Position numbers and translations under genes: made by a program. Below the pieces are notes generated by a model that made no database searches, was not told where the DNA came from, and saw only the letters and a program-made list of their open reading frames with translations. 64,000 bases of DNA, from contig OZ241826.1 in assembly GCA_965202585.1 (NCBI GenBank), positions 93,124,001 to 93,188,000 on the forward strand. Reading direction: 5' to 3'. This stretch comes from Thalia democratica. Its lineage: Eukaryota. This document shows positions 17,206-55,756 of the stretch, piece by piece. The number at the start of each line of letters is the position of its first letter. Position 1 is the first letter of the stretch.

Positions 17206-19220
17206 CAGGGGTCGGCAAAGTGCGGCCCGCGAAGGGTAAATCTAAGGCCCGCGAGCACGTTTTTATTTTTAATGGAATGCGGCCCGCGAAAGAAAGTTTT
17301 GCGGCCCGCGAGCATGTAAATTTGGCCCGCTGAGCAAATATATACTGTAAGTTAAATTTTTTTGATAAATTTAGTTTTAAGTTCCTGTATAACATTTTAA
17401 GACAATTAAAAGACTTTACTGATTTAGCTTAAAATGTGAAAACGACAGGTTAGCATTCTACCAGGTTTTTTTTTCAATTTTATTATAATCTTTATCTTAC
17501 AATAGCAAATTATTTTCTGAAGCAGAATGTAAAAAGTGCTTTGAATTAGTAAGATAGTAATATAATACCTACTTGGTAAAAAACTGAATGCAAATATTTT
17601 CCGTTTTGAACAAAAGTAATGCACAGTAATTAACTGAAAAGTCATTTCTTTACAGTTTAGTTTTTTGTACACGTTTTTTATACCTAAGTTTCTATTACAG
17701 ATGTTTTATTTTTAAATGTTATATTCTAGCTTACACAGAAACATTTAAAATAACATAATAAAAATAATAATAATAATAATGTTAATAATAATGATAATAA
17801 TAATGAAAATGAAAATAATGATAATAAAAAAAAAAAGTTTATTTAATTTTGATTTTGACACCTTTGATTTTTTAGAAGTTTTCTTTGCTTTTTAAATTAA
17901 TTCTTATGCACACCAATGAACAAAAATGCTCATATTTTAAAACACTTTTTATTTAATACTTAACGAGATAAAATTTAGTTTATGCATAATTTACTAATAC
18001 TATTATTTCTACATGTAATATCTAAGTGTGTACAGACACAAATATATGGCATAAATTAAAAAAGTTTTTCTTAGGTATACTTTTTAGTTTTTCAAACCAT
18101 GTTTTTTGGCAAAATAAGTTAATTTTTATGCGTTGCATACTAATATAAACAGTTACTGTTTTTTGGAACTGCCTATTAAATACAAACTAGATTGAGAAAT
18201 GGTAATTTATAAAGTTTGTACATTTTTAATCAAAATAGTTCAAATTCGATCAAGTAAACAAATAAAAATTGCCACACACTCAGACTTTGACTATTTGAAG
18301 ACTTCAAATCTCAGGCTAATTTAGTAATATTTCAGTTTTTAACTTGCTTTTTGTATGCTAAAATATCATGCTAGTTTTGGTCACTCGGACTGACTTTTTT
18401 GCTTTAAAGATTCGTAAATTAAATTGATGATGTATGTTTTGTTCAATGCACACTGTTGGTTTTAATTAAAACATATGCAAATTTTAAGTCTTAAGCTGAT
18501 ATAATTTGAATTATTATTTATACTGATTGTATACATATAAATGTGAACAATTAGTGGTGCCAAAAAAATCCCGGTAAAACTTGGAATTCGACAATTTGTA
18601 CTTGAAAAATCTGAAAAAGCCCTGAATTTGAAAATTATCGAAAAAACTGGAACTTTAAATATTTTTAAGATGTAAAGTAGTGAAATTTCAATTTTACATA
18701 AAAAATCAACCATATAAATATTTTTATTTAAAAAATATTAAAAGTATCTTAACAGTATCTTTAAAAATTTTCTATAATATTTAGGACACATTTTGTTACC
18801 TTTTACTTAATTACATAGAAGCAAAAAGTTGTACTTTTAAAAACTTTATATTGGTGCATTGCACCTTTGCTATAAAAAGTCTTTACCTATTGTTGTGCAT
18901 TTTATTGGAACTAAACCTAGAAATTTTTCTAAGATGTCAAAATTAATAAAACCACCTGTAATAAAAGTTCTAAAATTAGCAATATCTGTTGTATCAGTTT
19001 TCGCATCTTAATAGATTGAATTAAATCCTAATTTGGTTTATGCGGCTTTATAATGTTCAGAAATTTCCTAAACACGACTTCTTGTTGATATTGAAGAAAT
19101 AATCAAAAATATTTTACTAACGCAAACACAAACTATTCAAATAAGTTTTCAACTCTCAACGGTATCTTTTTTTAGTAATTAATTTTGCTACTTTATAACT
19201 TGCCTGAACAGTTTTTTTCT
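17206..19220 (-). mobile_element. Decayed, internally deleted hAT (Buster/Charlie-type) transposon
   Basis: Terminus CAGGGGTCGGCAAAGTGCGGCCCGCG with GGCCCGCG subterminal repeats. The preceding 8-mer TTATAAAT fits NNNTANNN, and the empty site is visible in the paralogous flanks near 13378 and 38655. Reverse complement of 32225-34021. Confidence 0.75.
17763..17826. repeat. Imperfect (AAT)n microsatellite
   Basis: AATAATAATAATAATAATGTTAATAATAATGATAATAATAATG read directly. Confidence 0.8.
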
Positions 19221-25680: not shown

Positions 25681-28600
25681 GTTTTTTTAATCGTTCAATA
25701 ATCTATATATTTTGACTAAATAGCTTCAGATTAAATTATTCAACAAAATGTAGCTTTAAAATTACTACTAAGATCCGTTTTATCTTAGAAAAACATTTTT
25801 TATTCTTGTTTTTTAAAGTAACTATTTTTATTCTTGTAAAGTTTAAAAAACAAATAATATTGATGCAAGTTATAGTTTATTGGTTAAAAATAAAAAAAAA
25901 CGATGAAATCAGATTATTTTAGTTTGTCATTGTTCGGTATCAAAAACCAGCTGAATCTGAAAATAATATAAATTTTAAAATTTATAAAATATGCAATGAA
26001 CACTGCTGTATAACTTAGTTTTTTAGTATGTTTTATTTATTTTTTATTCTCAAATGTTGTATTAAATGTTAATTAAATTTTGAACAGCAATACTTTATCT
26101 TCTAATAAGAAAATTTTTATTAAAAAAGTTTGAAAATTTAAGATGAAAATACTCAAATATTTTGTCATTTAGTTTAACATAGTAACATTTATTAATTGTA
26201 GAACAAACTTACATAGTGTCTGGAACGAGCTTAAGCTTGATCTGTGTAAAAAATAAGTTTTTAAGTTACTTAGGTTAATTTAATTTTTATTAATTAAACA
26301 GCTAAGGCCTAAAACTTAATTAATTCAAACATAACTCATTAAGCTTTACTTAAAAAAAGCTTACTTGATTTTTTTCAAAATAAATGTTAGTAAACAAAAC
26401 TCATAAATGTTTATACTGTTTTGAAATGTGTCTTTTATTCGATTAATAAACAATTTGAAATACTTAAAAAAGCCTAGAACTAGTGGTTCTCAATAAAAAA
26501 GTTTCAGTAAAATAGATAAAAATAATTATGCTGCATTTCTTACGGCAGATCTCGGCAACCTTACATTATTAATTACCAAGTTTTTTGTAAAAATTTGTTC
26601 GCTGGCAGTATCCAATAAAATAGTGCATTTTTTTACCAAAACTACGCAATAATAAATCACTAGTAGTTACTAATTATCAAAATAAGAGCCTAACGCAGTT
26701 TTTAACACAAAATATTTTGTATTGATTTACTGAAGTAAATCTAAACTGAAAAGTACACTAAGTGCCGCAGTATTCATTTGGAAAAATATCTCAAAAAAAC
26801 TACTAACCGTTGCTTACGTCACCATAGTAACCATGGTGATAATACCCGTGGTGGTAACCGTGGCGATATCCGTATCCGTAGTAGTAATCTGATTAAAAAT
26901 TATTATATTTTTGTTAATTTTTGTTTAAACTCAATATTTTGTGTCGCTAATACTTTCTACTTTAAATATTGTAGTAAATATGTTTTGTACAAAACAAAAA
27001 CATATTTGTTCAAATGTATTAAAATTAGTACAAATTGATATTTTTTGTTACTTTACATTTAAACTTTAAATGTTTGCTATTAAAATAACTTCAACTTTTG
27101 AACAAAGTAACAAGTATATAAAATATTTTTAATTAGTTGTAAATTAAATGTATACATAAAGTAAAATACTGAATAAAGTCAATTTAAAAAGGAAATGGTT
27201 ATATTGTATCATAAAAACATCATAAATATGTTGTATCAAAAATATACTTATAATCATAAAAACAAACCATCATTGTTGTTGTTGTCACCATAGTAATGAT
27301 GATGGTAATAAGGATGTCCGTATCCGTATCCATAATAGTAATCTGTTTTTGAATAATAATATTAAATTAAATCTATACATAGCACCACTTGACATGGTTA
27401 ATATAAAACTAAGTCTAAACATGAAAAAAAAATGGCTTAATAATCTCTCAATAAAAATTTAAGCATCATTGTAAAACAATTATCTAAAGTGGTAAAAACA
27501 AACACTTTTTATTGTTATTGCCACTATCTTCCTAAAACACATCAAGTTATAAATTAACAATGAAATAATTATACATTTGTATAAAACTTTCTTTGCATTC
27601 TTTTACAACAAATATAGAACATTTTTGGCGAAAAATACGAATAAAGTAAGCTTTCTGAGTATGGCAAAATAACATTAAAAACTATCGAGGTATTTAAAAT
27701 ACTTAGCTAAAAAAATTTAAAGTAAGTTTTTAAATTCAGTGATCATATTGTATCAACAAGACATACTTATAACTATAATAACAAACCATCGTTGTTGTTG
27801 TTGTCACCATAGTAATGATGATGGTAATAAGGGTGTCCGTATCCGTATCCATAATAGTTTGAAGTTAAACGTTATTTAAACTTTATGTATTTTTTTTTAA
27901 TTTAGCTTAAACATAAAGCCTGTTTTAAAAAATGAAAAATATTCTAAATTGCAAAATTAAATAACGTTGAGCGATTATCAAAATCGATTCATATAATTCA
28001 CTTATAGGGTTTATGAAAGAATAGTTTATAAGTATAACTTATTTCAAAATTTCTACTAAATACAAAAAAGTTGTGGTTGTTATTCTATTATAGTTTTTTT
28101 AAATGAAGAACGAATGAGAGTACTAAAAAGTATTTCTAAAGTACAGTTTTTTTAATCTTCTTACAAGTAAAAACAGTTTAAAAAATAGTTAAAATATTGA
28201 AAAATTAACTTTCTAAAAAAAAAAATATTAATAAACGATAACAAAGACATTGTAAAATAAATTAAAATATAATTCATTTTAAAGCTTTATATCTTAAATG
28301 AGAATGATTGCAATATAAACGTAAAACTTTGTATTAAAAAGTTTTAAAATAAGTGCGCTTAACTTAATGAAACAAAAACAATTATATTTTTTCGAAATCT
28401 TGATAGTTTGGAAAATTATTAAAGTAAAGTTTACTAGTACACAGTTTTGAAAGTCCACGTAAGTATTTGGTTCATCAAACTATTGCAACTAACTTTAAAC
28501 CGTAAAATTTAAAAAGTTAGTTTTTAAACAGTCTCCCTCAGCTAATAGTGTGAGTGGTTCTAAAATGTCTTTTTAACTCACAGTCTTTTTGTTCTTCATC

Positions 28601-28797
28601 ACCGAGAATGGCATGACCGATTCCTCTAACAGCACCAATTGCGTGATGAGCAACTCCAGCTACTCCTCTGATGGCATGGTGAATAAGTCCGAAGAAAACT
28701 GTTTGTTTTCGTTAAATTTTAAAAAAGTAAAAGTTCTATGTCAACACGTAACTATATTTATAATAATTTAATAAATTATTTTTACCACTTTATAACT

Positions 28798-29004
28798 GGG
28801 GCACATTCAAATCCACCCGCGTTTAAAATATACCCAGTCAAATTCGAAAACCGCTTACCATCGAGGGTAAGGATTAGAGGTAACAGTAAAAGTGAAAAAT
28901 AAATTAAAAAAATTAAAAAATGTATAAAATAAATGAATGATTAAAGAAAATAAAAAATAAAAATTGGGTGGATTTTGAACGCGGGTGGATTTTGATAGTA
29001 TACC
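28798..29004. mobile_element. MITE with ~40-bp TIRs and telomere-like internal motif, intronic
   Basis: Left CAAATCCACCCGCGTTTAAAATATACCCA versus right TGGGTGGATTTTGAACGCGGGTGGATTTTGATAGTATACC. Interior GAGGGTAAGGATTAG. Shared with 48497-48716. Confidence 0.7.
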
Positions 29005-29950
29005 TTTAAACTAACACAAAGATTTCGCTTTTGTATAATAAAAGGATTTAGTTTAGTTTTAAGTTTAAAGAAATATTTAACTTTAACTAAAATTTAAAGA
29101 AAGAAATTATTTTATCATTAAAATTAATTTTAATACAACCAGTAAAACGAATTTACATAATTAAATTTAAGATAAAACTAAAAAAAAAGCAAATGTTATT
29201 AGGTTGTTTATAACTCACAGTCTCTGTTGTTGTCATTCACTTTAAGTCCGTCCTTTACAAGTTGGTCCATAACTTTGTTTGCCATATCATTAACTGTTTT
29301 AAGTTGTATAATATAAAATCTTTATTTGATTTTAAGTAGTGTAAAACAGTATGTTTGTTTCGTGTATAAGTTTGTTTATATTATAGTGTTTATAAAGCAG
29401 TTTAAATAAAAAAATATGGTAAAAGTAAGAAATTATATTTTGACTTAAATAAATTAGTCTTTATTTAAAATCTTAAGTTTAAAACAATAACTGCTTAATT
29501 TAGTAAAACTTATTTAACTGAATAATGTTCTTGAATTTTATAAAACTTGTCTGCAAACAGTAGCTTTTTATTTTATGTTTCTTCGAAAAATAAATGTTGA
29601 GATTAAGTTAGGAAAGATCTTGTTGTGTAACTTAGTTAGACATGTTATTAAATTTAGGATTTTAAGACTAAAATAATATTTTAGTTTAACTTACTTTCTT
29701 CATCACCGAGTATGGCATGACCGATTCCTCTAACAGCACCAATTGCGTGATGAGCAACTCCAGCTACTCCTCTGATAGCGTGGTGAATAAGTCCGAAGAT
29801 GACTAAATTTAAAAATAATTTCAAATACATTTAAAAAGAGTATGCTACAAAATAGCACATGTATTTACACAATTAATAACTTTTATAAAATCTCGATTAT
29901 TTACTTACAGGTTGAATTAATATGTAATAATTTTAAACTTTAAAAAAGCT

Positions 29951-30519
29951 AAATTTAAATAAATATCACAGATGTTCTTGTGCTAAAACTTTATTCCGAC
30001 TAACGGCGTTTCACTGCTCTCAAATAAATTTAAGAACAGATCTACGGAGTCTATAAAATGTTAACACACATTAGAAAAAAAGCAGAAAAAAGCATGTATA
30101 ATTATGTATAGTGTTTATCTAGGTAGTAACTATAAATGGACTTTATGGTTTAAAAACAAAGTTTGGGATATTTTAAGTAAGTTTTAAGTTAGTTCCCAAA
30201 CTTTGTTTTTAAACCATAAAGTCCATTTATAGTTACTACCCCAAACTTTGTTTTTAAACCATAAAGTCCATTTATAGTTACTACCTAGATAAACACTATA
30301 CCTAATTATACATGCTTTTTTCTGCTTTTTTTCTAATGTGTGTTAACATTTTATAGACTCCGTAGATCTGTTCTTAAATTTATTTGAGAGCAGTGAAACG
30401 CCGTTAGTCGGAATAAAGTTTTAGCACAAGAACATCTGTGATATACATTCCGATAAGCTTATCAGGATCTCCAGGATTTAACGCCTTATAACGTTACATC
30501 TTATAAATTTAAATAAATA
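29951..30519. mobile_element. Palindromic insertion with 15-bp target-site duplication (retroelement, possibly Penelope-like)
   Basis: AAATTTAAATAAATA at 29951-29965 and 30505-30519. The paralog near 49665 has a single diverged copy. Arms 29963-30168 and 30194-30444, with a 45-bp direct duplication in the right arm. Confidence 0.75.
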
Positions 30520-31267
30520 GATTTTTCAAATCTTAATTAAATTCAGACTTAAATAAAATCAAATTGTCTTTGAAGTTACCAAATTCTTTTTATATTGTTA
30601 ATTTCAAAATTTTTAAGTATGCAAAAATTTTGATAATTTTCGCCTAGCATACTTTTAAACTCATAAAAGAACTAAAACTTAAATCATATTGTTTAAACAG
30701 TTTAAAAACTTACAATCGTTTTTAGACTTGCTGTCTTTAGATTGGAAAATATCCTCTACCATTTGTTTAGCTAAAACTTGAGCGACTAAAAATGAAAATA
30801 CAATTAAAAAACATAAGCATTTTAATGTAAATAAACAGCTAGTATTGTGACTAAAATCAAATAAGTTAAACATAAACTGCTGAGTTTTTATAATTTTGTC
30901 ACTGTAGAAGTATTTTATCACTGACAATCTTTTTGTTCTTCATCTCCAAGTATGGCATGACCGAGTCCTCTAACAGCACCAATTGCGTGATGAGCAACTC
31001 AGGCTACTCCTCTGATAGCATGGTGAATAAGTCCGAAGAGAACTAATTATTAAATATTTAGTCAAGAAATTAACTAAACCTAAAAAAAGTATTGATGTGT
31101 TAATATATATATAAATGCTTGTAAAAACATAATAGCTAAAAGATGACACAAGTTTATTTAAAACTAACAATCTCTGTTTTCTTTGTTGTCTTCCATATTT
31201 GCCTGTTTAAGAAGTTCATCTGTCATTTCTTTAGCCAATTTGTTGCCTGATTTAAACTTAATTAAAT

Positions 31268-44493: not shown

Positions 44494-46603
44494 TTTTGTA
44501 TTAGTTGAGTACTTATAAATCTTTTAAAATTGATTTTCGGTAATTTTTTATGTCATATAAAGATTTTATAACGAAAGAAATAATGCAAGTTAAGATCATA
44601 CAAAAAAAAATTATTTGTAAAAACTTGTAAATGTGTAATATAACGTTCTTATAATAAAAAATAGTTTTATTAAAATTATTAGTAATATTGACTGTTTAAA
44701 AAATATTTTTGCATCAATCGAAGAATCTGACAACTTATAAATATTTTTGCTCGTCTACTTTTTACAGATTAAATTATTCGATTAAATTTATCTTTAGTTA
44801 TTTGATTAAGCGTTGTTTTTCATAGTTAGTTTTGTTTGTTTCTAGCACATTGCTAAGTTTAATTTGTTTTTGTTTGCGACAACTAATTATCTGAGCCATA
44901 ATTTGCAATTTATAACGAAGCACTTCATCGAAAAAAATGTTCAATATATATATATATACACCTACTCCTTTATTTAGCTGTAAAGTTTTTATTAACCTCG
45001 ATTACACAATTAAAAAGTTCTTATAAAAAATATTTCTGATAAGAAAACAATATCTATTAACTTTTTTCTCGGCAACATCTATTTTATGTTAGACACTTAT
45101 TTTTAAATTGAATACAACTGTATAAAAATTTTATATTAACGTTTTAGTTTTAAGTTTTTTCGATCACTTTATGTTTTGACTGATAAGCTATAAATTTAAT
45201 TATTCAACAAAACTTAGTTTTAAAACTGCTATAAAAATCCGTTTTCTCTTGGTTTTAAACAATTTTTTTGCTTTGGTTCTTAGAAAGTAATTATTTTATT
45301 CTTATGTAGTTAAAAAAACAAACTTTTTTGATGCAAGTTATAGTTTATTGATAAAAAAAACAAAACGATGAAATCATGTTGTTAGGTATTGTAATCCAGT
45401 TGAACCTGTAAAATATAAAAAAAATTGTAAAGCTAACAAAAATATGCATTGTTACTGCTGTATAACTCAGTTTTTCAGTCTGTTCTACTTATTATTTTAT
45501 TCTTGAATATGGTCCTAAGGTAATTTTGAACAGCAATACTTAAACTTCTAATAAGAAATTTTATATTAAAAATGTTTTAGAATTTTTAATGAAAGTATTT
45601 AAATATTTTTCAATAAGTTTAACATACTAATTTATTTAATGATATATTTGGATGTATTTACATCTTAACTCTTCAATATTATTCTTATGTAAAAAACTAA
45701 TCTCCATTTTTAAATTTCTTAACTATTTACCAAAAGTTTAGTAATACAATTTGGTATCTAAACTGGTAAGTTTAAAACTTACATAAACTATACTGTCCAA
45801 ATCTAAACTATTTTACATTCATAATGAGTAAAGTAAGCAATCTTTATCAGACGATTTATAAACAAATAGCAACAATTTTGGACCTTTACTAAATTCACGT
45901 ATTCAACATTTTTAAAACACAAAGAAAAGTTTAATAAGTATTTAAGCTCGGTACCTTTTCTAAGAGTTTTTTTCAAATGTTTTAATAAGTTATTAGCAAT
46001 TATTAGCTGTAATTAAATAAACTTACGTAGTGTTTGGGACGAGCTTAAGCTTGATCTGTGCAAAAAATAAGTAATTGTAAGTTTAAGTTAGTTTATTAAT
46101 TAATTAATAAGCAATGGTCTAAAACTAAGTGATCTCAAACACTTGCTTAACTTAAAAAAAGCTTACTATATTTTTGTAAAAAATAATATTAGTTTATAAA
46201 ACTTATAAATGTTTATACTTTTATAAAATATGTCTTTTAATCGATTAATAAACAATTTGGAATACTTAAAAAAGCGTAGAACTAGTGGTATTCAATAAAA
46301 AAGTCTCAGTAAAATAGATAAAAATAAATGTGCTACATTTATTACGGCAGATCTCGGCAACCTTACATTCTTAATTATAAAGTTTTTTGTAAAAAAATGT
46401 TCGCTGGCTGTATCCAATAAAATAGTGCATATTTTTACCAAAACTACGCAATAATAGATCACTAGCAGTTACTAAATATCAAAATAAGAGCTTAACGCAG
46501 TTTTTACCACAAAATGTTTTTATTAATTTAGCAAAAACTAATACAGCTGAAAAGTACATTAAGTGCCGAAGTATTCATTTGAAAATATATCTCAAAAAAA
46601 CTA

Positions 46604-46689
46604 CTAACCGTTGCTCACGTCACCATAGTAACCATGGTGATAATACCCGTGGTGGTAACCATGGTGATATCCGTATCCATAGTAGTAAT
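46604..46689 (-). CDS. Polyprotein exon 20: (D)YYYGYGYHHGYHHGYYHHGYYG-DVSN(G*)
   Basis: Acceptor ATAATCAG. Ends at TAG 46604-46606, or at donor GTTAGT after 46609. Confidence 0.8.
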
Positions 46690-49600
46690 CTGATTATTAA
46701 TTATTATATTTTTGTGAAGTTTTGTTTAAACTCAATATTTTGTGTCGCTAATACTTTCTACTTTAAATATTGTAGTAAATATGTTTTATACAAAACAAAA
46801 ACATATTTGTTTAAATGTACTAAAATTAATATAAATTAATATTTGCTGTTACTTTACATTTAAACTTTAAATATTTGCTATTATAATAACTTCAACTTTT
46901 GAACAAAGTAATAAGTATATAAATATTTTTAAAAAGTTGTAAATTAAATGTATACATAAAGTAATAATAATAAATAAAGTCAATTTTAAAGGAAATGATC
47001 TTATAGTAATCTAAAATAAACTTATAAATATAAAAATAAACCATCATTATTGTTGTTGTCACCATAGTAATGATGATGGTAATAAGGGTGTCCGTATCCA
47101 TATCCATAATAGTAATCTGATTATTGATAAAAAAAGTAAATTAAATCTATACATAGCACCACTTGACATGGTTAATATAAAACTTAAATATTCAAAAATT
47201 AGCTTGCTAATATTTCAATAAAATTTAAGCATCACTATACAACAAATATCTAACATTATTATACAAACATTTATTATTATTATTGGCACTACCTAAACCA
47301 TAAACCAATTTAGTTATAAGTTATTATGATGTTTAATATACATTCGTATGAAACTTTCATTGTATTCTATTACAACACAATATATATAGAACGTTCTTTG
47401 CAAAAACAACAAAAAAAAAAAGTAAGCTTTCTTACTATGGCAAAATAACATTGAATTTTATTGAAGTATTTAAGTACTTAGCTAACAAAATTCAAACGTA
47501 AGTACTACAGGCAGTGATTATATAGTAATCTAAAATAAACTTCTTATTATAAAAACAAACCATCATTGTTGTTGTTGTCACCATAGTAATGATGATGGTA
47601 ATAAGGGTGTCCGTATCCGTATCCATAATAGTCTGAATTTAAAAATTAGTTAAACTTTCTTTTTTCATCTAGCTTAAATATAAAGCTTGTTTTCATAAAT
47701 TAAAATTTTTCTAAATAGCAAAATTAAATAACGTTTAGCGATTATCGAAATAGATTCATTTAGTTTACTTATAGCGTTTATAAAAGAATACTTTTATAAG
47801 TATAACTTATTTCTAAACTTCTACAAAATACAAAAAGTTTTAAGCTTAAAATCTTTTTGAAAAATAAGTTGTGGATGCTATTTTGTTAAAGCTTTCCCAA
47901 TTAAACAACGAACAAGAGTACTAAAAAATACTTTTAAAGTAGAGTTTTGTTAATCTTTTTACAAGTAAATAAAGTTAAAAAAATAGTTAAAATATTGAAA
48001 AATTAAACTACTAAAAATAATATTATTAAACAATTACAAAGTCACTGTGTAATAAACTAAAATTAATACATTTTAAAGCTGTTCATCTCAAATGAGAACA
48101 AGTTCAATAAAAATGTAATATTTAGTACTAAAATTTTTTAAATAAGTAAATATAAATATAATTATTTAATAAATAACTTAATAAAACAAAAATAAATACA
48201 ATTTTTTTGAAATTTTGATAGTTTGGAAATTTCAAAAGTTAGTTTTTAACAGTCTCCCTCAGCTAATAAGGGGTTCTAAAATGTCTTTTTAACTCACAGT
48301 CTTTTTGTTGTTCATCACCGAGTATGGCATGACCGATTCCTCTAACAGCACCAATTGCGTGATGAGCAACTCCAGCTACTCCTCTGATAGCGTGGTGAAT
48401 AAGTCCGAAGAAAACTGAAAAAAAGTAAAAGTTCTCAGTCAACACGTAACTTAAATTTTAATGAAATAAGATATTCTTTTTACTACTTTTAAAACTGGGA
48501 CACGTTAAAAATTCACCCGCGTTTAAAATCCACCCAATCAAATTTGAGAACCGCTTACCGATCGAGGGTAAGGGTTAGGGGTAACAGTAATAGCGAAAAA
48601 TATTTTAAAAAATGCAAAAGCATATAAAGTAAATTAACAAATGAAGAAAATATAAAAACATTGGGTTGATTTTAATTGGGTGGGTTTTGAACGCAGGTGG
48701 ATTTTGATAGAATACCTTTAAACTAACACAAAGTTTTCGCTTTTGTATAATATAAGGGTCTAATTTAGTTTTAAATTAAACAAATATATTTAGCTTTGTT
48801 TTAATACTAAAATAAAGAAACTATTCTATCATTAAATATATTTTAATATTACCTTTGGAACTAATTTACATAGTTAAATTTAAGATAAAACTAAAAAAAA
48901 AAGCAAATGTAGTTAGGTTGTTTATAACTCACAGTCTCTGTTGTTGTCATTTACTTTAAGTCCGTCCTTTACAAGTTGGTCCATAACTTTGTTTGCCATA
49001 TCATTAACTGTTTTAAATTTTATAATAAAAAAACTTTATTTGATTTTAAGTAGTGTAAAACAGTATGTTTGTTTCGTGTATAAGTTTGTTTATATTATAG
49101 TGTTTATAAAGCAGTTTAAAGAAAAAATCTAGTAAAAGTAAAAAATCTATGTTTTTTACTTAAATAACTTAGTCTTTATTTTGAATTTTAAGTTTAGAAC
49201 AAAAACTGCTTAATTTAGTAAAAATTATTAAACTGAACAATGTTCTTGAATTTTATAAAACTTGTCTGCAAACAGTAGCTTTTTATTTTATGATTCTTTG
49301 AAAAAAAATGTTGAGATTAAGTTAGGAAGTATCTTGTTGTGTAACTTAGTTAGACATGTTATTAACTTTGGGTTTTCAACACTAAAATAATATTTTAGTT
49401 TAACTTACTTTCTTCATCACCGAGTATGGCATGACCGAGTCCTCTAACAGCACCAATTGCGTGATGAGCGACTCCTGCTACTCCTCTGATAGCATGGTGA
49501 ATAAGTCCGAAGATGACTAAATTTAAAAATAATTTCAAATACATTTAAAAAGAGTATTCTACAAAATAGCACATGTATTTACACAATTAATAACTTTTAT

Positions 49601-52600
49601 AAAATCTCGATTTTTTGCTTACAGGTTAAATAAATATGTTATTATTTTAAACTTTTAAAAAGCTAAATTTAAATAATTAGATCTTTCAAATCTTAATTTA
49701 ACTCAGACTTAAATTTAATTAATTGTTTTTGAAGTTACTAAATTCTTTTTATATTGTTAATTTCAAACATTTTTAAGTATGCAAAAATTTTGATAATATT
49801 TGCCTAGCATACTTTTAAACTCATAAAAGAACTAAAACTTAAACCATATTGTTTAAACAGCTTAAAAACTTACAATCGTTTTTAGCCTTGCTGTCTTTAG
49901 ATTGGAAAATATCCTCTACCATTTGTTTGGCTAAAACTTGAGCGACTAAAATAGAAAATACAATTAAAAAACATAAAAATTTTAGTGTAAATAAACAGCT
50001 AGTATTGCGACTAAAATCAGATAAGTTAAACATAAACTGCTGAGTTTTAATAATTTTTTCACTGTAGAAGTACTTTATAACTAACAATCTTTTTGTTCTT
50101 TATCTCCGAGTATGGCATGGCCGAGTCCTCTTACAGCACCAATTGCGTGATGAGCAACTCCAGCTACTCCTCTGATAGCGTGGTGAATAAGTCCGAAGAG
50201 AACTAATTATTAAATATTTAGTCAAGAAATAAAATAAACTCAAAACAATTTAGGTATTAACATAAGAAAAAAAAATACTTTATTTAAAAAACATAATAAC
50301 TAAATTATGAAACAAGTTTATTAAAAACTAACAATCTCTGTTTTCTTTGTTGTCTTCCATATTTGCCTGTTTAAGAAGTTCATCTGTCATTTCTTTAGCC
50401 AATTTGTTGCCTGTTTTAAACTTAATTTAATTTTTGTGCTAACAAAAAGTGCATATCTTAAAAATGAATTAGTATTTTTTACTTTTTCAGCCAGAGAAAA
50501 AAATATCCTAAGATTTTTGATAAAATATTAAATATATAAGAATAAGTATATCTATTTTGATGTAAATTTTAGTTTTCAAGAGCAAGTATCTTAATTTGTG
50601 TCTTTAACTGCACTTGTTGCATAGGAAACTCATAATACTTCGAATAAACTACTCAAGAAAATGTATAATCTATTCGTAAGTATAAGATCTATTCATGAGG
50701 CATGATGTCTTGAACTACTCTAATGATAGATTTTTAAATATAAACATTTTTACTGAGTTTTCAAATTAAAATTTGTTATAGCTTACTTTCTTCATCTCCG
50801 AGTATGGCATGACCGAGTCCTCTAACAGCACCGATTGCGTGATGAGCAACTCCAGCTACTCCTCTGATAGCGTGGTGAATAATTCCAAAGATGACTAATC
50901 ATTTTATGTTTTTTATAACCACTTATGGCTAAAAATTATGTTTTTAATGAATAAAACAACACTCAAATTTTTTTCATTCCAATATTTTTCGTCAAATTCT
51001 CTTCAGGGAAACTACAATTGAAACAATAAAATAAAACACAACAAGTATTTATACAAAATAATGTTTTTTACAAACTAATTAACTGATCAATTAAGTAAAC
51101 ATAAATGTAATCAACGAAAATGTAATCAACAAAGCTTTAAAAATCAACACAAAATGGTCTTAACTAAATAAGGCTAGGGTGTAATCAAATTTTTTCTTTT
51201 TGCATAAATTTGGTTTTTTTAAATGTATTAAAATGGCTTCAAGTCTAATTAATTCCAATGTATTTGAACATTGTCGCATTACACTGAAATTAGATAATGC
51301 AAACTTTTTTCCACAACTTGGATTATTCACAAGGTGTTCTGCTATCGCAGATTTTTTTTATTGCATTTTTGACTGCAATACTCTTTTCGTCTTTTTCGTC
51401 TTTGATATATGAAGTGATACACTTGGGAACATAATCCTTTATTCTAGTTGTGAGGTATGTTCCCAAGTGTATCACTTCATATATTAAAGACGAAAAAGAC
51501 GAAAAGAGTATTGCAGTCAAAAATGCAGTAAAAAAATCTGCGATAGCAGAACACCTTGTGAATAATCCAAGTTGTGGAAAAAAGTTTGCATTATCTAATT
51601 TCAGTGTAATGCGACAATGTTCAAATACATTGGAATTAATTAGATTTGAAGCCATTTTAATACATTTAAAAAAACCAAATTTATGCAAAAAGAAAAAATT
51701 TGATTACACCCTAGCCTTATTTAGTTAAGACCATTTTGTGTTGATTTTTAAAGCTTTGTTGATTACATTTTCATTAATTACATTTATGTTTACTTAATTG
51801 ATCAGTTAATTAGTTTGTAAAAAACATTATTTTGTATATATACTTGTTGTGTTTTATTTTATTGTTTCAATTGTAGTTTCCCAGAAGAGAATTTGACGAA
51901 ATATATATTTGAATGAAAAAAATTTGAGTGTTCTTTTATTCATTAAAAAGTTATAAAATAAAGTCTGATGTTTAAATTATTAAAAATTATATTATTTTGA
52001 ATCTATGAACTAAATAGCGCAATTAACACTAATTAAATTTTTCTAAATGCACAACAAGTTGTAAAAGAAGAAGTGAAATTGAGTGGTTTAAAATGTTTGT
52101 TAAACTAACAATCTTTCTGTTGTTCGTCACCAAGTATGGCATGACCGAGTCCTCTAACAGCACCAATTGCGTGATGAGCAACTCCAGCTACTCCTCTGAT
52201 GGCATGGTGAATAATTCCGAAGATGACTGAAATTAAAAATAACACACTCTCGTAATTAACCCGTCAAATGAATTATAATAAAATAAATAGTGTACACTCT
52301 TTTAAATATTTGTTATAAGTTAGGGTTTGAAAACGTACAATTCTCAGGCTGGCTCGCCAATAGAAATATCAGGCTTGCCTGGTATTTATAAGTTTAAAAT
52401 GACAGGTGCATAATATTTAAAATTGAGCTTTTTGATAAGACTCTGTTTGAAAATGATTTTATACATTATTATTACTTAGCAGTTCTTGTAAAAATATGTT
52501 TCTAATTATAGTTTTAAATTTCAAGTTGTTTTTGAACTTTTTAGAGTTTTTTAACATATACACGGCCTGATAAGATTTAAAATCTGGTAAAGATTTTTTG

Positions 52601-55600
52601 GTAAAACATTTTTTTAAATTGATGCCTGCATACTTAAACATTTGCTTGTTCCTACATTAAATTTTAAACTTCACGCAGTTTTTAGATTTCATCTGTTCTA
52701 AGTTCAAAAAGATAAGCTTCAAATTTATATTTATAGTAAATACAAAACTGAAACCGTCAATAAAAAGCATTAACCGTAAACCAAATTTATCTAGCTTAAT
52801 TTTAGATTAACCAAAAAATCAGATATTATCAATTTGTTAATAAACTCACAGTCTCTGTTGTTGTCATTTACTTCAAGTCCATCTTTTACAAGCTCGTCCA
52901 TAACTTTGTTTGCCATATCATTAACTGTTTTAAATGGTTTAATTAATAAATGTTAATTTAAATTTAGTTATTGTAAAACAAAATATTTTTGTTTTGTATA
53001 TGAGTTTGATAGTGTAAAGGTGTTTACAAATTTTTTTATAATATATAGACTTAAACCTATTTAAATAATTGAAAAGCTATTTTACCTACTTAAATACCTT
53101 AGTCTTAAAATAAAATCTCAAGTTTAGGGCAATTAAGTGTTTGAACCAGTATAGGCTTCTAGTAAAACAAAAATTGAAAGACTAAAGTTTATTCTCTCAC
53201 ATATGTCTAAAAGATAATTATAAAGAACTTGTTAAAAAAATCACATTTTGTTACGTAGTTATATATGATATTAACTTAAGGATTTTAAGAAGTAACTACA
53301 AAATTCTTCTTGCTTAACTTACTATCTTCATCACCAAGTATGGCATGACCAAGTCCTCTAACAGCACCAATTGCGTGATGAGCAACTCCAGCTACTCCTC
53401 TGATAGCGTGGTGAATAAGTCCAAAGATAACTAAATTTAAATTAAAGTTTATATTATTTTAAAATAAAACATTCAACTTAGAGATTATGTATATCAGAGA
53501 ATAAACTTATCACAGTCTAATAAATGCTGACTTCATTATAAATTGATATTTATTTAACTACGAAATGCTTTACTTACAGTAGTTTTCAAATACTTTAAAC
53601 ACGAAAAAAAAAATGTATATGCCTATCATTTTATTTAAGTTTATTATCGCAGTAAAACTTTATATATAGTTTTAAAACTTACAATCGTTTTTAACTTTGC
53701 TGTCTTTAGCTTGGCGAATGTCCTCTACCATTTGTTTAGCCAAAACTTGAGCGACTAAAAAACATATTTATTTCAAACAGATAATCAAAAATAAAATTTT
53801 TCAATTAAAAGTTTGTGTCATAACTAAAATCAGATTAGTTGAGCAAAATTACCGAGTTTTTATCATTAATAACTATAAACTATTGTATAACTAACAATCT
53901 TTTTGTTCTTTATCTCCAAGTATGGCATGACCGAGTCCTCTAACAGCACCAATTGCGTGATGAGCAACTCCAGCTACTCCTCTGATAGCGTGGTGAATAA
54001 TTCCAAAGATAACTGTTTATTAAATATTTAGTCAAGAAATAAACTAAATCCAAAATGGTTAAGGTATTGACATATTAATAAAAAAACAACTTTGTACTTC
54101 GAAAAAATCAGTAGTTATGTTATAAAATAAATCAAATACTAACAATCTCTGTTTTCTTTGTTGTCTTCCATATTTGTTTGTTTAAGAAGTTCATCTGTCA
54201 TTTCATTAGCCAATTTGTTGCCTGTTTTAAACGTAGTTTTAATTTGTGTGCTAACAAAATTATACATATTTTAAAGTTGGATAAGCATTTTATGTCTGTT
54301 AATCTAACTAAATCAAATATTAGTAGCTATTTAGCAAAAAAAAAAGTTTTTTGATAAGGAATTATGAATAAAAAAATAATCTTATTTTTGTGTCTTTAAT
54401 AATAAACTTTGTATTAGAAACTAACATTTTTTGTAATAATCTACTAAACTAAAAATTCAATTTATATTTAAGTGTAAACTCTGCATTAAAGCTATCACTA
54501 ATTAAACATTTATGAAGTTTTACATTCAAATAAAAATATTTTTTTATTATTGTATTAACTTATAGTTTGTTATTATGAATTTACTTACTTTCTTCATCTC
54601 CAAGTATGGCATGACCAAGTCCTCTAACAGCACCGATTGCGTGATGAGCAACTCCAGCTACTCCTCTGATAGCGTGGTGAATAATTCCGAAGAGAACTGT
54701 TTATTTTCGTTAAATTTTAAAAACCGATATAATTTTAAAGTTTTTTATTCAAATAGAACTTAATACTGTTTACTAGATGATTTTATAAAAAAATATATAA
54801 ATTTAATGATAGTATTAACTAAACTGATAAGCTGTTTTAACTGATATAATCTATGAACTTTGCTTTAGTTTTTATCTTTTTTGAAGCTAAAATTATATTA
54901 TCATCCTGCAAAACTTGTTAAGGTTTTTTTTTATATGTCAACAAACGGTTGTCAACAAAAAATTAAATCTTAGACTATAAAGATTGTTAACTTTGTATTA
55001 CGTTTAACTTACTTAATTTAATTTTTTGTTAACTGAATATAAACATATTTGAAAGTATTAATAGTATTTTTATTAATTAAAACTAACAGTCTTTGTTTTC
55101 TTTTGTGTTTCCGTCTTTGATTAAATCGTTTGCCATCATTTTTGCAACTTTAAATAATGTTTAGTTTTAAATGCTTTATTTATTTACTTTTAAGTAAACT
55201 ATAAAAAAAAAAAGAATATTTTTGATAAAAGGTAAACTTTTTATCGACGTTTTACTATTTTAATACAATTCTTATAACTAGTTTGATTTATAAGTGCGTA
55301 TAAAGCAAGTATCTTCGATATAAAAAAAAAAGATTTTATCCCAGTTAAAACTTTGTTTATATATTTCAAACTGAAATAAATCTAATAAAATTTTGATACT
55401 ATGTATACTATCAATTTTATTTTTAGTTTTATTTAAAAAGAGGTAAAAATTTGTAACGTAAACTTTTTCTTCAATTTTAAGCAAATTATTAAAAATTTCT
55501 AACCATCAGCGCTGTCCATAGACTTAACTGTAAAATTAATTTATTTAAATCTTTAATATAAAAATAAATACCCAATTAATGGTAGGAAAGTAATCAGAAA

Positions 55601-55756
55601 TTTAGTTGTTACTAAAAACTAAACACTAAAACTGTAGTCGTATCCTTATTAGTAGTAAAAACTTTTAAATCGTTATATATAATCAAACAAACCAGCTTTA
55701 GACATTGAAGTTGCTACAAAAGCAAAAGAAAGAGCGACAACCAAACAGAACTTCAT
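46604..55756 (-). CDS. Multi-exon secreted polyprotein precursor of eight His-rich amphipathic (clavanin-like, putative antimicrobial) peptides and three Tyr/Gly/His-rich peptides
   Basis: Twenty exons, all with AG/GT boundaries and all introns phase 1, join into one open frame of about 572 aa starting MKFCLVVALSFAFVATSMSKA. Differences among repeated exons are almost all synonymous in this frame. The exact 3' end (GGT TAG at 46604 versus a further spliced exon) is uncertain. Confidence 0.88.
47042..47116 (-). CDS. Polyprotein exon 19: (D)YYYGYGYGHPYYHHHYYG-DNNNND
   Basis: 75 nt, acceptor ATAATCAG, donor GTTTAT, phase 1-1. Confidence 0.8.
47561..47632 (-). CDS. Polyprotein exon 18: (Y)YYGYGYGHPYYHHHYYG-DNNNND
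   Basis: 72 nt, acceptor AATTCAG, donor GTTTGT, phase 1-1. Confidence 0.8.
48251..48262 (-). CDS. Polyprotein exon 17: putative 12-nt microexon (S)EGD
   Basis: TATTAG-CTGAGGGAGACT-GTTAAA, identical 12-mer in copy A (28530-28541). The upstream intron would be only 35 nt. Confidence 0.45.
48298..48414 (-). CDS. Polyprotein exon 16: peptide 8 (F)FFGLIHHAIRGVAGVAHHAIGAVRGIGHAILG-DEQQKD
   Basis: 117 nt, acceptor TTTTTCAG, donor GTGAGT. Confidence 0.88.
48497..48716. mobile_element. MITE with TIRs and GGGTTAGGG core, intronic (paralog of 28798-29004)
   Basis: AATTCACCCGCGTTTAAAATCCACCCAAT versus TTGGGTGGGTTTTGAACGCAGGTGGATTTTGATAGAATACC. Confidence 0.7.
48933..49007 (-). CDS. Polyprotein exon 15: spacer (I)NDMANKVMDQLVKDGLKVNDNNRD
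   Basis: 75 nt, acceptor AAAACAG, donor GTGAGT. Confidence 0.85.
49409..49516 (-). CDS. Polyprotein exon 14: peptide 7 (F)IFGLIHHAIRGVAGVAHHAIGAVRGLGHAILG-DEE
   Basis: 108 nt, acceptor AATTTAG, donor GTAAGT. Confidence 0.88.
49874..49945 (-). CDS. Polyprotein exon 13: spacer (F)AQVLAKQMVEDIFQSKDSKAKND
   Basis: 72 nt, acceptor ATTTTAG, donor GTAAGT. Confidence 0.85.
50086..50202 (-). CDS. Polyprotein exon 12: peptide 6 (F)LFGLIHHAIRGVAGVAHHAIGAVRGLGHAILG-DKEQKD
   Basis: 117 nt, acceptor TAATTAG, donor GTTAGT. Confidence 0.88.
50333..50410 (-). CDS. Polyprotein exon 11: spacer (S)NKLAKEMTDELLKQANMEDNKENRD
   Basis: 78 nt, acceptor AAAACAG, donor GTTAGT. Confidence 0.85.
50787..50894 (-). CDS. 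Polyprotein exon 10: peptide 5 (F)IFGIIHHAIRGVAGVAHHAIGAVRGLGHAILG-DEE
   Basis: 108 nt, acceptor TGATTAG, donor GTAAGC. Confidence 0.88.
50941..51949. mobile_element. Penelope-like retroelement 3' fragment as a ~1-kb inverted repeat (GIY-YIG C-terminus plus hammerhead-like motif)
   Basis: Arms 50941-51433 and 51456-51949 with a 22-nt spacer. Translation LTTRIKDYVPKC...SAIAEHLVNNPSC...NFSVM...ELIRLEAILIHLKKPNLC resembles the C-terminal part of the Penelope GIY-YIG endonuclease. Confidence 0.75.
52110..52226 (-). CDS. Polyprotein exon 9: peptide 4 (F)IFGIIHHAIRGVAGVAHHAIGAVRGLGHAILG-DEQQKD
   Basis: 117 nt, acceptor ATTTCAG, donor GTTAGT. Confidence 0.88.
52850..52924 (-). CDS. Polyprotein exon 8: spacer (I)NDMANKVMDELVKDGLEVNDNNRD
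   Basis: 75 nt, acceptor AAAACAG, donor GTGAGT. Confidence 0.85.
53323..53430 (-). CDS. Polyprotein exon 7: peptide 3 (F)IFGLIHHAIRGVAGVAHHAIGAVRGLGHAILG-DED
   Basis: 108 nt, acceptor AATTTAG, donor GTAAGT. Confidence 0.88.
53683..53754 (-). CDS. Polyprotein exon 6: spacer (F)AQVLAKQMVEDIRQAKDSKVKND
   Basis: 72 nt, acceptor TTTTTAG, donor GTAAGT. Confidence 0.85.
53896..54012 (-). CDS. Polyprotein exon 5: peptide 2 (F)IFGIIHHAIRGVAGVAHHAIGAVRGLGHAILG-DKEQKD
   Basis: 117 nt, acceptor TAAACAG, donor GTTAGT. Confidence 0.88.
54144..54221 (-). CDS. Polyprotein exon 4: spacer (S)NKLANEMTDELLKQTNMEDNKENRD
   Basis: 78 nt, acceptor AAAACAG, donor GTTAGT. Confidence 0.85.
54589..54696 (-). CDS. 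Polyprotein exon 3: peptide 1 (F)LFGIIHHAIRGVAGVAHHAIGAVRGLGHAILG-DEE
   Basis: 108 nt, acceptor TAAACAG, donor GTAAGT. Confidence 0.88.
55088..55147 (-). CDS. Polyprotein exon 2: pro-region (V)AKMMANDLIKDGNTKENKD
   Basis: 60 nt, acceptor TTAAAG, donor GTTAGT. Resembles the spacer exons. Confidence 0.8.
55693..55756 (-). CDS. Polyprotein exon 1: signal peptide MKFCLVVALSFAFVATSMSKA
   Basis: ATG at 55756, basic-hydrophobic-small residue pattern, donor GTTTGT, phase 1. Confidence 0.82.

Follow-up and report, generated by a model that had tools for sequence, protein, structure and literature searches.

How did a 32-residue peptide come to carry histidine residues at a spacing of exactly 11, and what may such a peptide be for? 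The question is posed by a stretch of 64,000 nucleotides from Thalia democratica (assembly GCA_965202585.1, contig OZ241826.1, positions 93,124,001 to 93,188,000 of the forward strand), here called the window. A preliminary description of this DNA, made from the letters alone, had marked positions 54589–54696 as a mature peptide with an exact histidine period and with copies that vary almost only at synonymous sites. We find that the peptide is encoded eight times within one spliced gene that is transcribed in ocean plankton, that its amino-acid sequence is under purifying selection, and that its histidine spacing stems from an internal 11-codon repeat. As to function, we lean towards membrane-active host-defence or lytic peptides that would be cut at Asp flanks from a secreted 576-residue polyprotein and would have their activity set by histidine protonation, a reading that, judged from sequence, seems to us slightly better than an even bet.

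The peptide is one unit of a spliced polyprotein gene

Translation of the minus strand at 54589–54696 returned the composition that had been described: histidine at positions 7, 8, 18, 19 and 29, two arginines (positions 11 and 25) and neither aspartate nor glutamate. The peptide does lie inside this span, but the coordinates are those of a complete 108-base exon with phase 1 at both borders (acceptor ...aaacag, donor gtaagt), of which 54602–54696 hold the peptide codons. The codon for Phe1 is split between T at 55088 and TT at 54696–54695, and the exon itself codes for residues 2–32 followed by G-D-E-E. For five histidines among 32 positions to fall into two adjacent classes modulo 11 has a probability of 3.4e-4 under random placement. 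The Gly/Ala/His-rich 32-mer consists of nearly three repeats of an 11-residue unit. Units two and three of a sister form ending in V-A-H-H-L-L agree at 11 of 12 bases. The histidine periodicity thus results from internal repetition of an 11-codon unit. It is exact in the 32-residue forms, but relatives of 28 residues place their third histidine at position 26, on the same face.

The exon belongs to a gene on the minus strand (46604–55756) in a window with a G+C content of 25.8%. Its 20 exons join to a single open frame of 576 codons, in which the peptide is present as eight cargo copies. Cargo exons and spacer exons, the latter mostly acidic, take turns along the gene. Each exon is of phase 1 with AG/GT borders, so that each cargo is preceded by an Asp codon and by the T that makes Phe1.

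The gene is spliced as modelled and transcribed in ocean plankton. Contigs from two marine metatranscriptome runs cover the exons at very high depth and most introns at a depth near zero, a few bins (e.g., 50400–50599) showing some coverage. GT..AG joints in RNA fall on predicted borders (55527>55693 and 49945>50086), and loose contig ends join cargo to the next spacer. For exon 54589–54696, 0.86 of its sequence words are present in RNA runs from at least two studies, the second of which sampled poly-A RNA.

The same RNA contigs also contain extra GT..AG joints between exons that are not adjacent in the model (49945>53896, 50202>52850 and 53745>55504). Either symmetric phase-1 exons may be skipped in some transcripts, or the contigs may come from paralogous genes.

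Selection acts on the amino-acid sequence

A tblastn search recovered 11 copies of the peptide in the window, all on the minus strand. They differ at 15 sites, 11 of which are third codon positions with exclusively synonymous variation (12 allele changes). The remaining four are first positions: three exchange Ile, Leu and Phe at residues 2, 5 and 27, and one, in the copy at 31040, turns GGA at residue 15 into TGA. The predominance of third-position differences among 11 copies, and the confinement of amino-acid changes to residues 2, 5 and 27 apart from one stop, had both been described correctly. The resulting tally of 12 synonymous changes to four conservative replacements and one stop departs from the expected synonymous fraction of 0.27–0.28 with p = 2–4e-4 (binomial test). 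Pooled Nei–Gojobori estimates for the window copies are 0.162 for synonymous divergence (dS) and 0.024 for nonsynonymous divergence (dN), which gives a dN/dS of 0.147, well away from 1. Among copies of the main form (type 1) genome-wide the tally is 27 synonymous changes to six replacements and one stop (p ~1e-9), and all replacements stay within Ile/Leu/Phe or Arg/Lys. These counts, together with the retention of the HH..(11)..HH pair in relatives from other plankton, bear out the earlier proposal that purifying selection acts on the peptide.

One might instead suppose that recent duplication and gene conversion merely make the copies look constrained, and that no selection acts on the peptide sequence itself. 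Flanking introns of different units are 0.77 identical, which is the baseline for unrelated AT-rich DNA (0.77), and third codon positions between units are 88.6% identical. This pairing of introns at the random baseline with roughly 89% identity at third positions points to exon-limited gene conversion, or to codon-level constraint, besides selection at the protein level. Of 136 pairs of variable sites in type-1 copies from the whole genome, 76 have all four gametes; the copies therefore exchange variants and are not independent lineages. Three of the 11 window copies, moreover, sit in a recent truncated 3′ duplicate of the gene at 26.8–31.25 kb. Such exchange, however, cannot create a synonymous excess: it cannot yield a ratio of 27:6 with every replacement conservative, nor does it account for a motif that different species share and that a paralog at dS >1.6 still retains. 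We regard this explanation as highly improbable and already disfavoured.

The truncated gene is the lower copy of a duplicated segment of ~5 kb with an offset of ~19.7 kb (26343–31267 versus 46145–50431, 82–96% identity). We found no signal exon in the part of the window that separates the truncated duplicate from the intact gene. Besides one TGA, the cargo exons of the duplicate differ from their parents nearly always at third positions.

Helix geometry and charge

The Eisenberg hydrophobic moment of the 32-mer is 0.41 with a peak at 99–100 degrees, a value reached by none of 5000 shuffles. On an 11/3 wheel the polar side reads, in order, Arg25, His7/18/29, Arg11/Gly22, Gly4/15/26 and His8/19/Ala30; the opposing hydrophobic face of Ile, Val, Leu, Phe and Ala spans ~200 degrees. 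AlphaFold2 places the cargo of a natural 118-residue precursor within one long helix with a predicted local distance difference test (pLDDT) score of 70–83. The long amphipathic helix that had been proposed is supported by the moment at 100 degrees and by this model; the single histidine stripe is not, as the wheel shows two (7/18/29 and 8/19/[30]), ~100 degrees apart, on either side of a glycine stripe (4/15/26). For a two-unit fragment (P0002) AlphaFold2 returned an all-helical but unreliable model (mean pLDDT 42.9) that neither supports nor refutes an intact fold.

The calculated net charge of the peptide rises from +2.5 at pH 8.1 to +7.2 at pH 5.5, and that of an Arg-free form from +0.5 to +3.5. 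This rise makes pH dependence chemically plausible. That acid or metal switches the peptide on, as the preliminary description suggested, can only be inferred. Of the traits of the linear cationic amphipathic α-helical host-defence peptides, a predicted amphipathic helix, a secretory precursor and a calculated net positive charge are found here.

Helices built on 11-residue repeats occur in apolipoproteins, α-synuclein, group-3 LEA proteins and type I antifreeze proteins. As in the cargo, the exact period keeps one face straight along a long helix. Those proteins, however, have Lys/Glu or Thr/Ala polar faces and are uncleaved or serve other roles, whereas the cargo has a polar face of His, Gly and Arg and is apparently released as a 32-mer. 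Flounder type I antifreeze protein is a helix of three 11-residue repeats encoded by a large gene family. Such an ice-binding helix would resemble the cargo in its 11-residue repeat, in having a Gly amide donor and in belonging to a multigene family, yet the cargo is not dominated by alanine (22%), lacks periodic threonine, and is strongly amphipathic with bulky Ile, Leu and Phe. Ice binding is the least likely of all explanations weighed in this work.

Flanks and predicted processing

The dipeptide G-D occurs exactly 11 times in the 576-residue product and always directly after a cargo, and Asp precedes all 11 cargos. No dibasic site (KR, RR, KK or RK) occurs in this product. In relatives the same D-cargo-G-D brackets enclose unrelated contents, among them 21- and 28-residue His helices, Tyr/His-rich pieces, R-H-Y, H-Y-Y and a Cys-containing 36-mer. 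A common flank around unrelated contents looks like a processing code, and the presence of unrelated cargo classes in one precursor makes this precursor a scaffold for the delivery of many kinds of peptide. The flanks are what suggests that a mature peptide is cut out; if the following Gly served for amidation, this peptide would have a calculated mass of 3278.89 Da, isobaric in seven of the eight cargos (3336.90 Da for the Gly-extended form), and of 3312.874 Da in cargo 8.

A multi-copy precursor with a signal peptide and a Gly amide donor after each cargo would also be expected if the cargos were amidated signals akin to neuropeptides or hormones. We consider such messengers very unlikely: the cargo is an amphipathic helix of 32 residues and high hydrophobicity, the genome has at least 66 copies, RNA contig depth in bulk plankton is very high, and the product lacks dibasic sites.

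Further cargo classes in identical flanks were seen in the public relatives P0024, P0026, P0003, P0013 and P0021, which derive from cDNA; among these cargos are a 23-mer rich in Trp and Lys and a piece of 36 residues with the end ...C-P-x-H-H. Residues ~350–409 of P0024 hold tiny cargos between Asp and Gly-Asp: R-H-Y, H-Y-Y and a 10-mer ending P-L-I. One may speculate that Tyr/His compounds of the tunichrome or halocyamine type derive from these cargos, and from the Tyr/Gly/His cargos at 46604–47632 in the window, and so have a gene-encoded source.

Relatives in the genome and in other plankton

A search of the 802 Mb assembly gave at least 62 matches; exons counted in the loci then fetched amount to at least 66 cargo exons in about seven loci. 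A second form of the peptide (L034:2776-2877:+) has three complete HH pairs, since histidine occupies both 29 and 30. A third form (L034:4686-4787:+) differs from the others by a dS of more than 1.6, has lost both arginines, and retains histidine only at 8, 19 and 30. We take this form to be the strongest internal evidence that histidine placement is being preserved. Cargos from other species measure 21, 28 or 32 residues, and nearly all keep H7H8 and H18; a few have H8 only.

We searched 1.84 billion representative proteins exhaustively with a profile of the family and obtained 21 matches. None of the 10 that we looked up bears a meaningful name; they derive from marine metatranscriptomes of Tara Oceans and the Joint Genome Institute (JGI), from one metagenome scaffold of Tara and from one set of foraminiferal transcripts. 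The matches and their cluster members include full-length cDNA products of 118–409 residues with the same signal-spacer-cargo layout (P0011 and P0024), which confirms the modelled splicing further. In Pfam no family scored above its curated cut-off: the best, DUF5429, reached 24.5 bits against a cut-off of 27, and the rest were at chance level. Genome and literature searches for DUF5429 came back empty, and we therefore dropped this sub-threshold match as compositional. A search of the ESM Atlas with the relative P0021 gave no usable match, and literature searches returned no paper with the motifs of the family. On sequence grounds we classify the peptide as a new, unnamed family within the known class of linear His-rich helical host-defence-type peptides. 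The unusual features of this family are its hendecad design, the multi-cargo polyprotein and the non-basic flanks.

The Tara metagenome scaffold (L040, 31.7% G+C) stems from another organism and encodes three 21-residue cargos with G-S-P-I-N-D...D-D spacers in one uninterrupted frame; the layout of one unit per exon is therefore not universal in the family. A two-cargo member (P0019) is filed in EukProt under a foraminiferan transcriptome labelled Bolivina argentea. Contamination by a planktonic or benthic tunicate seems more likely here than a true foraminiferal origin. An RNA contig with a loose end at ~53394 follows a cargo exon up to ...R-G-V and continues with D-L-H-A-F-G-A-H, which looks like a divergent family member outside the fetched loci.

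Comparison with known peptides

The clavanins A–E and clavaspirin from hemocytes of Styela clava resemble the cargo in being tunicate, rich in His, Gly and Phe, helix-forming, and built around a ...G-x-I-I-H-H... core. A clavanin precursor contains a single peptide, which may also precede G-D. Clavanins are C-terminally amidated and more active at pH 5.5 (PMC4904370; PMC8424629); Gly, the usual amide donor, follows every cargo, which may be amidated too. Unlike the 32-residue cargo, however, clavanins have 23 residues and place histidine at 10, 11, 17 and 21 without an 11-residue period. Clavanin A (sequence from PMC4904370) scored only 6.7 bits against the hidden Markov model of the family, a value reached by 436 of 20000 composition-preserving shuffles (2.2%), and no clavanin was recognised among the 21 matches of the profile search.

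A different role of the released peptides is conceivable, in which they would mainly bind metals or take part in redox reactions (Zn, Cu, Fe or V), together with the Tyr/His cargos of the precursor, instead of disrupting membranes. His10 and His11 of clavanin take part in Zn(II) binding at pH 7.4 (PMC8424629), and the HH pairs of the cargo resemble them; the precursor contains 9.4% histidine and co-encodes Tyr/His-rich cargos. On the other hand, the HxxxH zinc motif of clavanin (PMC8424629) is absent from the cargo, as is any amino-terminal Cu- and Ni-binding (ATCUN) motif with histidine at position 3. Furthermore, a conserved wide hydrophobic face has no role in simple chelation, and the type-3 paralog keeps only three well-separated histidines. 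We judge a primary role in metal or redox chemistry decidedly unlikely.

Phylloseptin-2 and phylloseptin-1 from frog skin (PDB 2JPY and 2JQ0) are the best matches to the peptide among solved chains, statistically weak with E-values of 0.22 and 0.46. Phylloseptins are amidated amphipathic helices of ~19 residues that start F-L-S-L-I-P-H and carry histidines ~11 residues apart. The aligned core of 17 residues reads L-I-x-H-A-I...V...H-H, and G-V-A-S-[IL]-A-K-H of phylloseptins resembles G-V-A-G-V-A-H-H of the cargo; the likeness along the first 20 residues is striking but statistically weak. Phylloseptin precursors combine a conserved prepro-region and a Lys-Arg site with one peptide each. In contrast to these short vertebrate peptides, the cargo has 32 residues and comes from a precursor without a dibasic site. 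Since the match is weak and the precursors differ, we read the likeness as convergence. The potency of phylloseptins, likewise amidated His-bearing helices, rises at pH 5 (PMC3742671).

Multi-copy polyproteins of antimicrobial peptides offer a parallel to the precursor architecture. Insect apidaecins, for example, and the cytolytic peptides of spiders, with their complex precursors, derive from polyproteins in which cationic peptides lie between acidic spacers. Like the polyprotein described here, such precursors are single secreted chains with many near-identical cationic peptides. They use basic or Glu-rich/Arg motifs for release, whereas Asp...Gly-Asp brackets are found here and each unit occupies its own symmetric phase-1 exon.

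Proposed release and action

How could these elements work together? Cleavage behind the invariant Asp on either side would free each cargo; its trailing Asp would then be removed, which would leave Gly exposed as the donor for C-terminal amidation. Until then the mostly acidic spacers may keep the peptides harmless within the precursor. Once released, the peptides would be active on membranes, in host defence or as lytic agents, with histidine protonation setting their charge (~+2.5 at seawater pH and ~+7 at pH 5.5) and hence their solubility and membrane activity. Analogues whose activity has been measured, the phylloseptins (more potent at pH 5) and the clavanins of tunicate hemocytes (active at pH 5.5), speak for this reading.

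Several observations weigh against this scheme. We know of no protease that uses such Asp flanks. The 32-mer contains no i/i+4 His pair, that is, no zinc motif of the clavanin type. AlphaFold2 confidence is moderate for the 118-residue precursor and poor for the two-unit fragment, and nucleotide identity between the copies owes much to exchange among them. Finally, constraint on the spacer exons (dN/dS 0.10–0.31) is as strong as that on the cargo exons, as would also be expected of a modular protein that is not cleaved.

In this last case the product would be a secreted protein that stays intact and has acidic helices interspersed with amphipathic, His-rich ones. It could be lipid-binding or emulsifying, or part of a tunic, mucus net or gut lining that is cross-linked through His/Tyr by metal or quinone chemistry. 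An 11-residue periodicity is a hallmark of surface-lying lipid-binding helices and of right-handed coiled coils, and the co-encoded Tyr/Gly/His-rich segments would suit cross-linking. Tunicates have indeed been reported to cross-link their tunic with fragments of proteins that contain 3,4-dihydroxyphenylalanine (DOPA) (PMC5465252). Against an intact protein stands the fact that the unrelated cargo classes have only the D...G-D flanks in common, as a processing code predicts. Module number and order also vary freely between genes and cDNAs (118–576 residues), and AlphaFold2 finds no confident tertiary packing (predicted template modelling score 0.28). We consider an uncut product unlikely and continue to favour released, membrane-active peptides.

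A wider picture, which is possible but on balance doubtful, would be that planktonic tunicates make abundant "histidine-zipper" peptides of exact 11-residue design, a family not described before, that their Asp-directed release from multi-cargo polyproteins mirrors the classical dibasic convertase route, that pH-gated lysis serves in defence or in the digestion of filtered microbes, and that short Tyr/His peptides from these precursors could be the gene-encoded origin, sought for long, of tunichrome-like compounds.

According to a review, tunicate antimicrobial peptides have been described from ascidians only, and thaliacean defence is poorly investigated (PMC5465252); our literature searches likewise found no paper on such peptides in pelagic tunicates. 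The family is transcribed across marine metatranscriptomes. Its designs of 21, 28 and 32 residues, with two arginines or none, form a natural series in which histidine placement can be tested against pH-dependent membrane activity. The strict Asp...Gly-Asp flanks around unrelated cargos point to a processing route without basic residues, which, if true, would change the prediction of peptide precursors in tunicate genomes.

Coordinates and further observations

The exons of the gene and the cargo exons of its truncated duplicate are collected in Table 1.

Table 1. Exons of the polyprotein gene and of its truncated duplicate (window coordinates)
Feature	Position	Strand	Remark
Exon 1: start codon and signal peptide (21 residues)	55693–55756	minus	donor confirmed by RNA joint 55527>55693
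Exon 2: short pro-region	55504–55527	minus	
Spacer exon before cargo 1, ending ...K-D plus T of Phe1	55088–55147	minus	
Cargo exon 1 (exon 4 of the gene)	54589–54696	minus	
Acidic spacer, class A	54144–54221; second copy 50333–50410	minus	
Cargo exon 2, ending ...G-D-K-E-Q-K-D	53896–54012	minus	
Spacer, class B	53683–53754; second copy 49874–49945	minus	
Cargo exon 3	53323–53430	minus	
Acidic spacer, class C	52850–52924; second copy 48933–49007	minus	RNA loose ends: ...I-L-G-D-E-E joined on
Cargo exon 4, directly before cargo exon 5 in the gene model	52110–52226	minus	
Cargo exon 5	50787–50894	minus	
Cargo exon 6	50086–50202	minus	donor confirmed by RNA joint 49945>50086
Cargo exon 7	49409–49516	minus	
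Cargo exon 8, begins F-F-F, Ile at 27	48298–48414	minus	
Three terminal exons, Tyr/Gly/His-rich cargos, D-cargo-G-D flanks	47561–47632, 47042–47116, 46604–46689	minus	stop codon 46604–46606
Three cargo exons of the truncated 3′ duplicate	30926–31042 (TGA at codon 15), 29695–29802, 28582–28698	minus	

Two further observations concern the origin of the DNA. Genome searches with Pfam PF03552 (cellulose synthase) and PF01341 (GH6) gave no match and are uninformative, as the search ran exon by exon and the GH6 control was silent too. A 16-base leader, which we take to be the ascidian-type spliced leader, occurs 1299 times in the genome compared to nine times for the reversed control, and we read this as an indication of tunicate origin.

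A short open-frame-like stretch at 17755–17829, rich in Tyr, His and Phe and interrupted by stops, matched the Tyr/Gly/His query weakly and is probably a TA-rich simple repeat. In the intron between cargo exons 4 and 5 (50950–52000) the DNA contig depth is 12,000–47,000, compared to ~400–1,000 nearby, and the RNA depth is very low. At this place one would expect a spacer exon; the high-copy repeat found there probably stems from the insertion of a transposable element.

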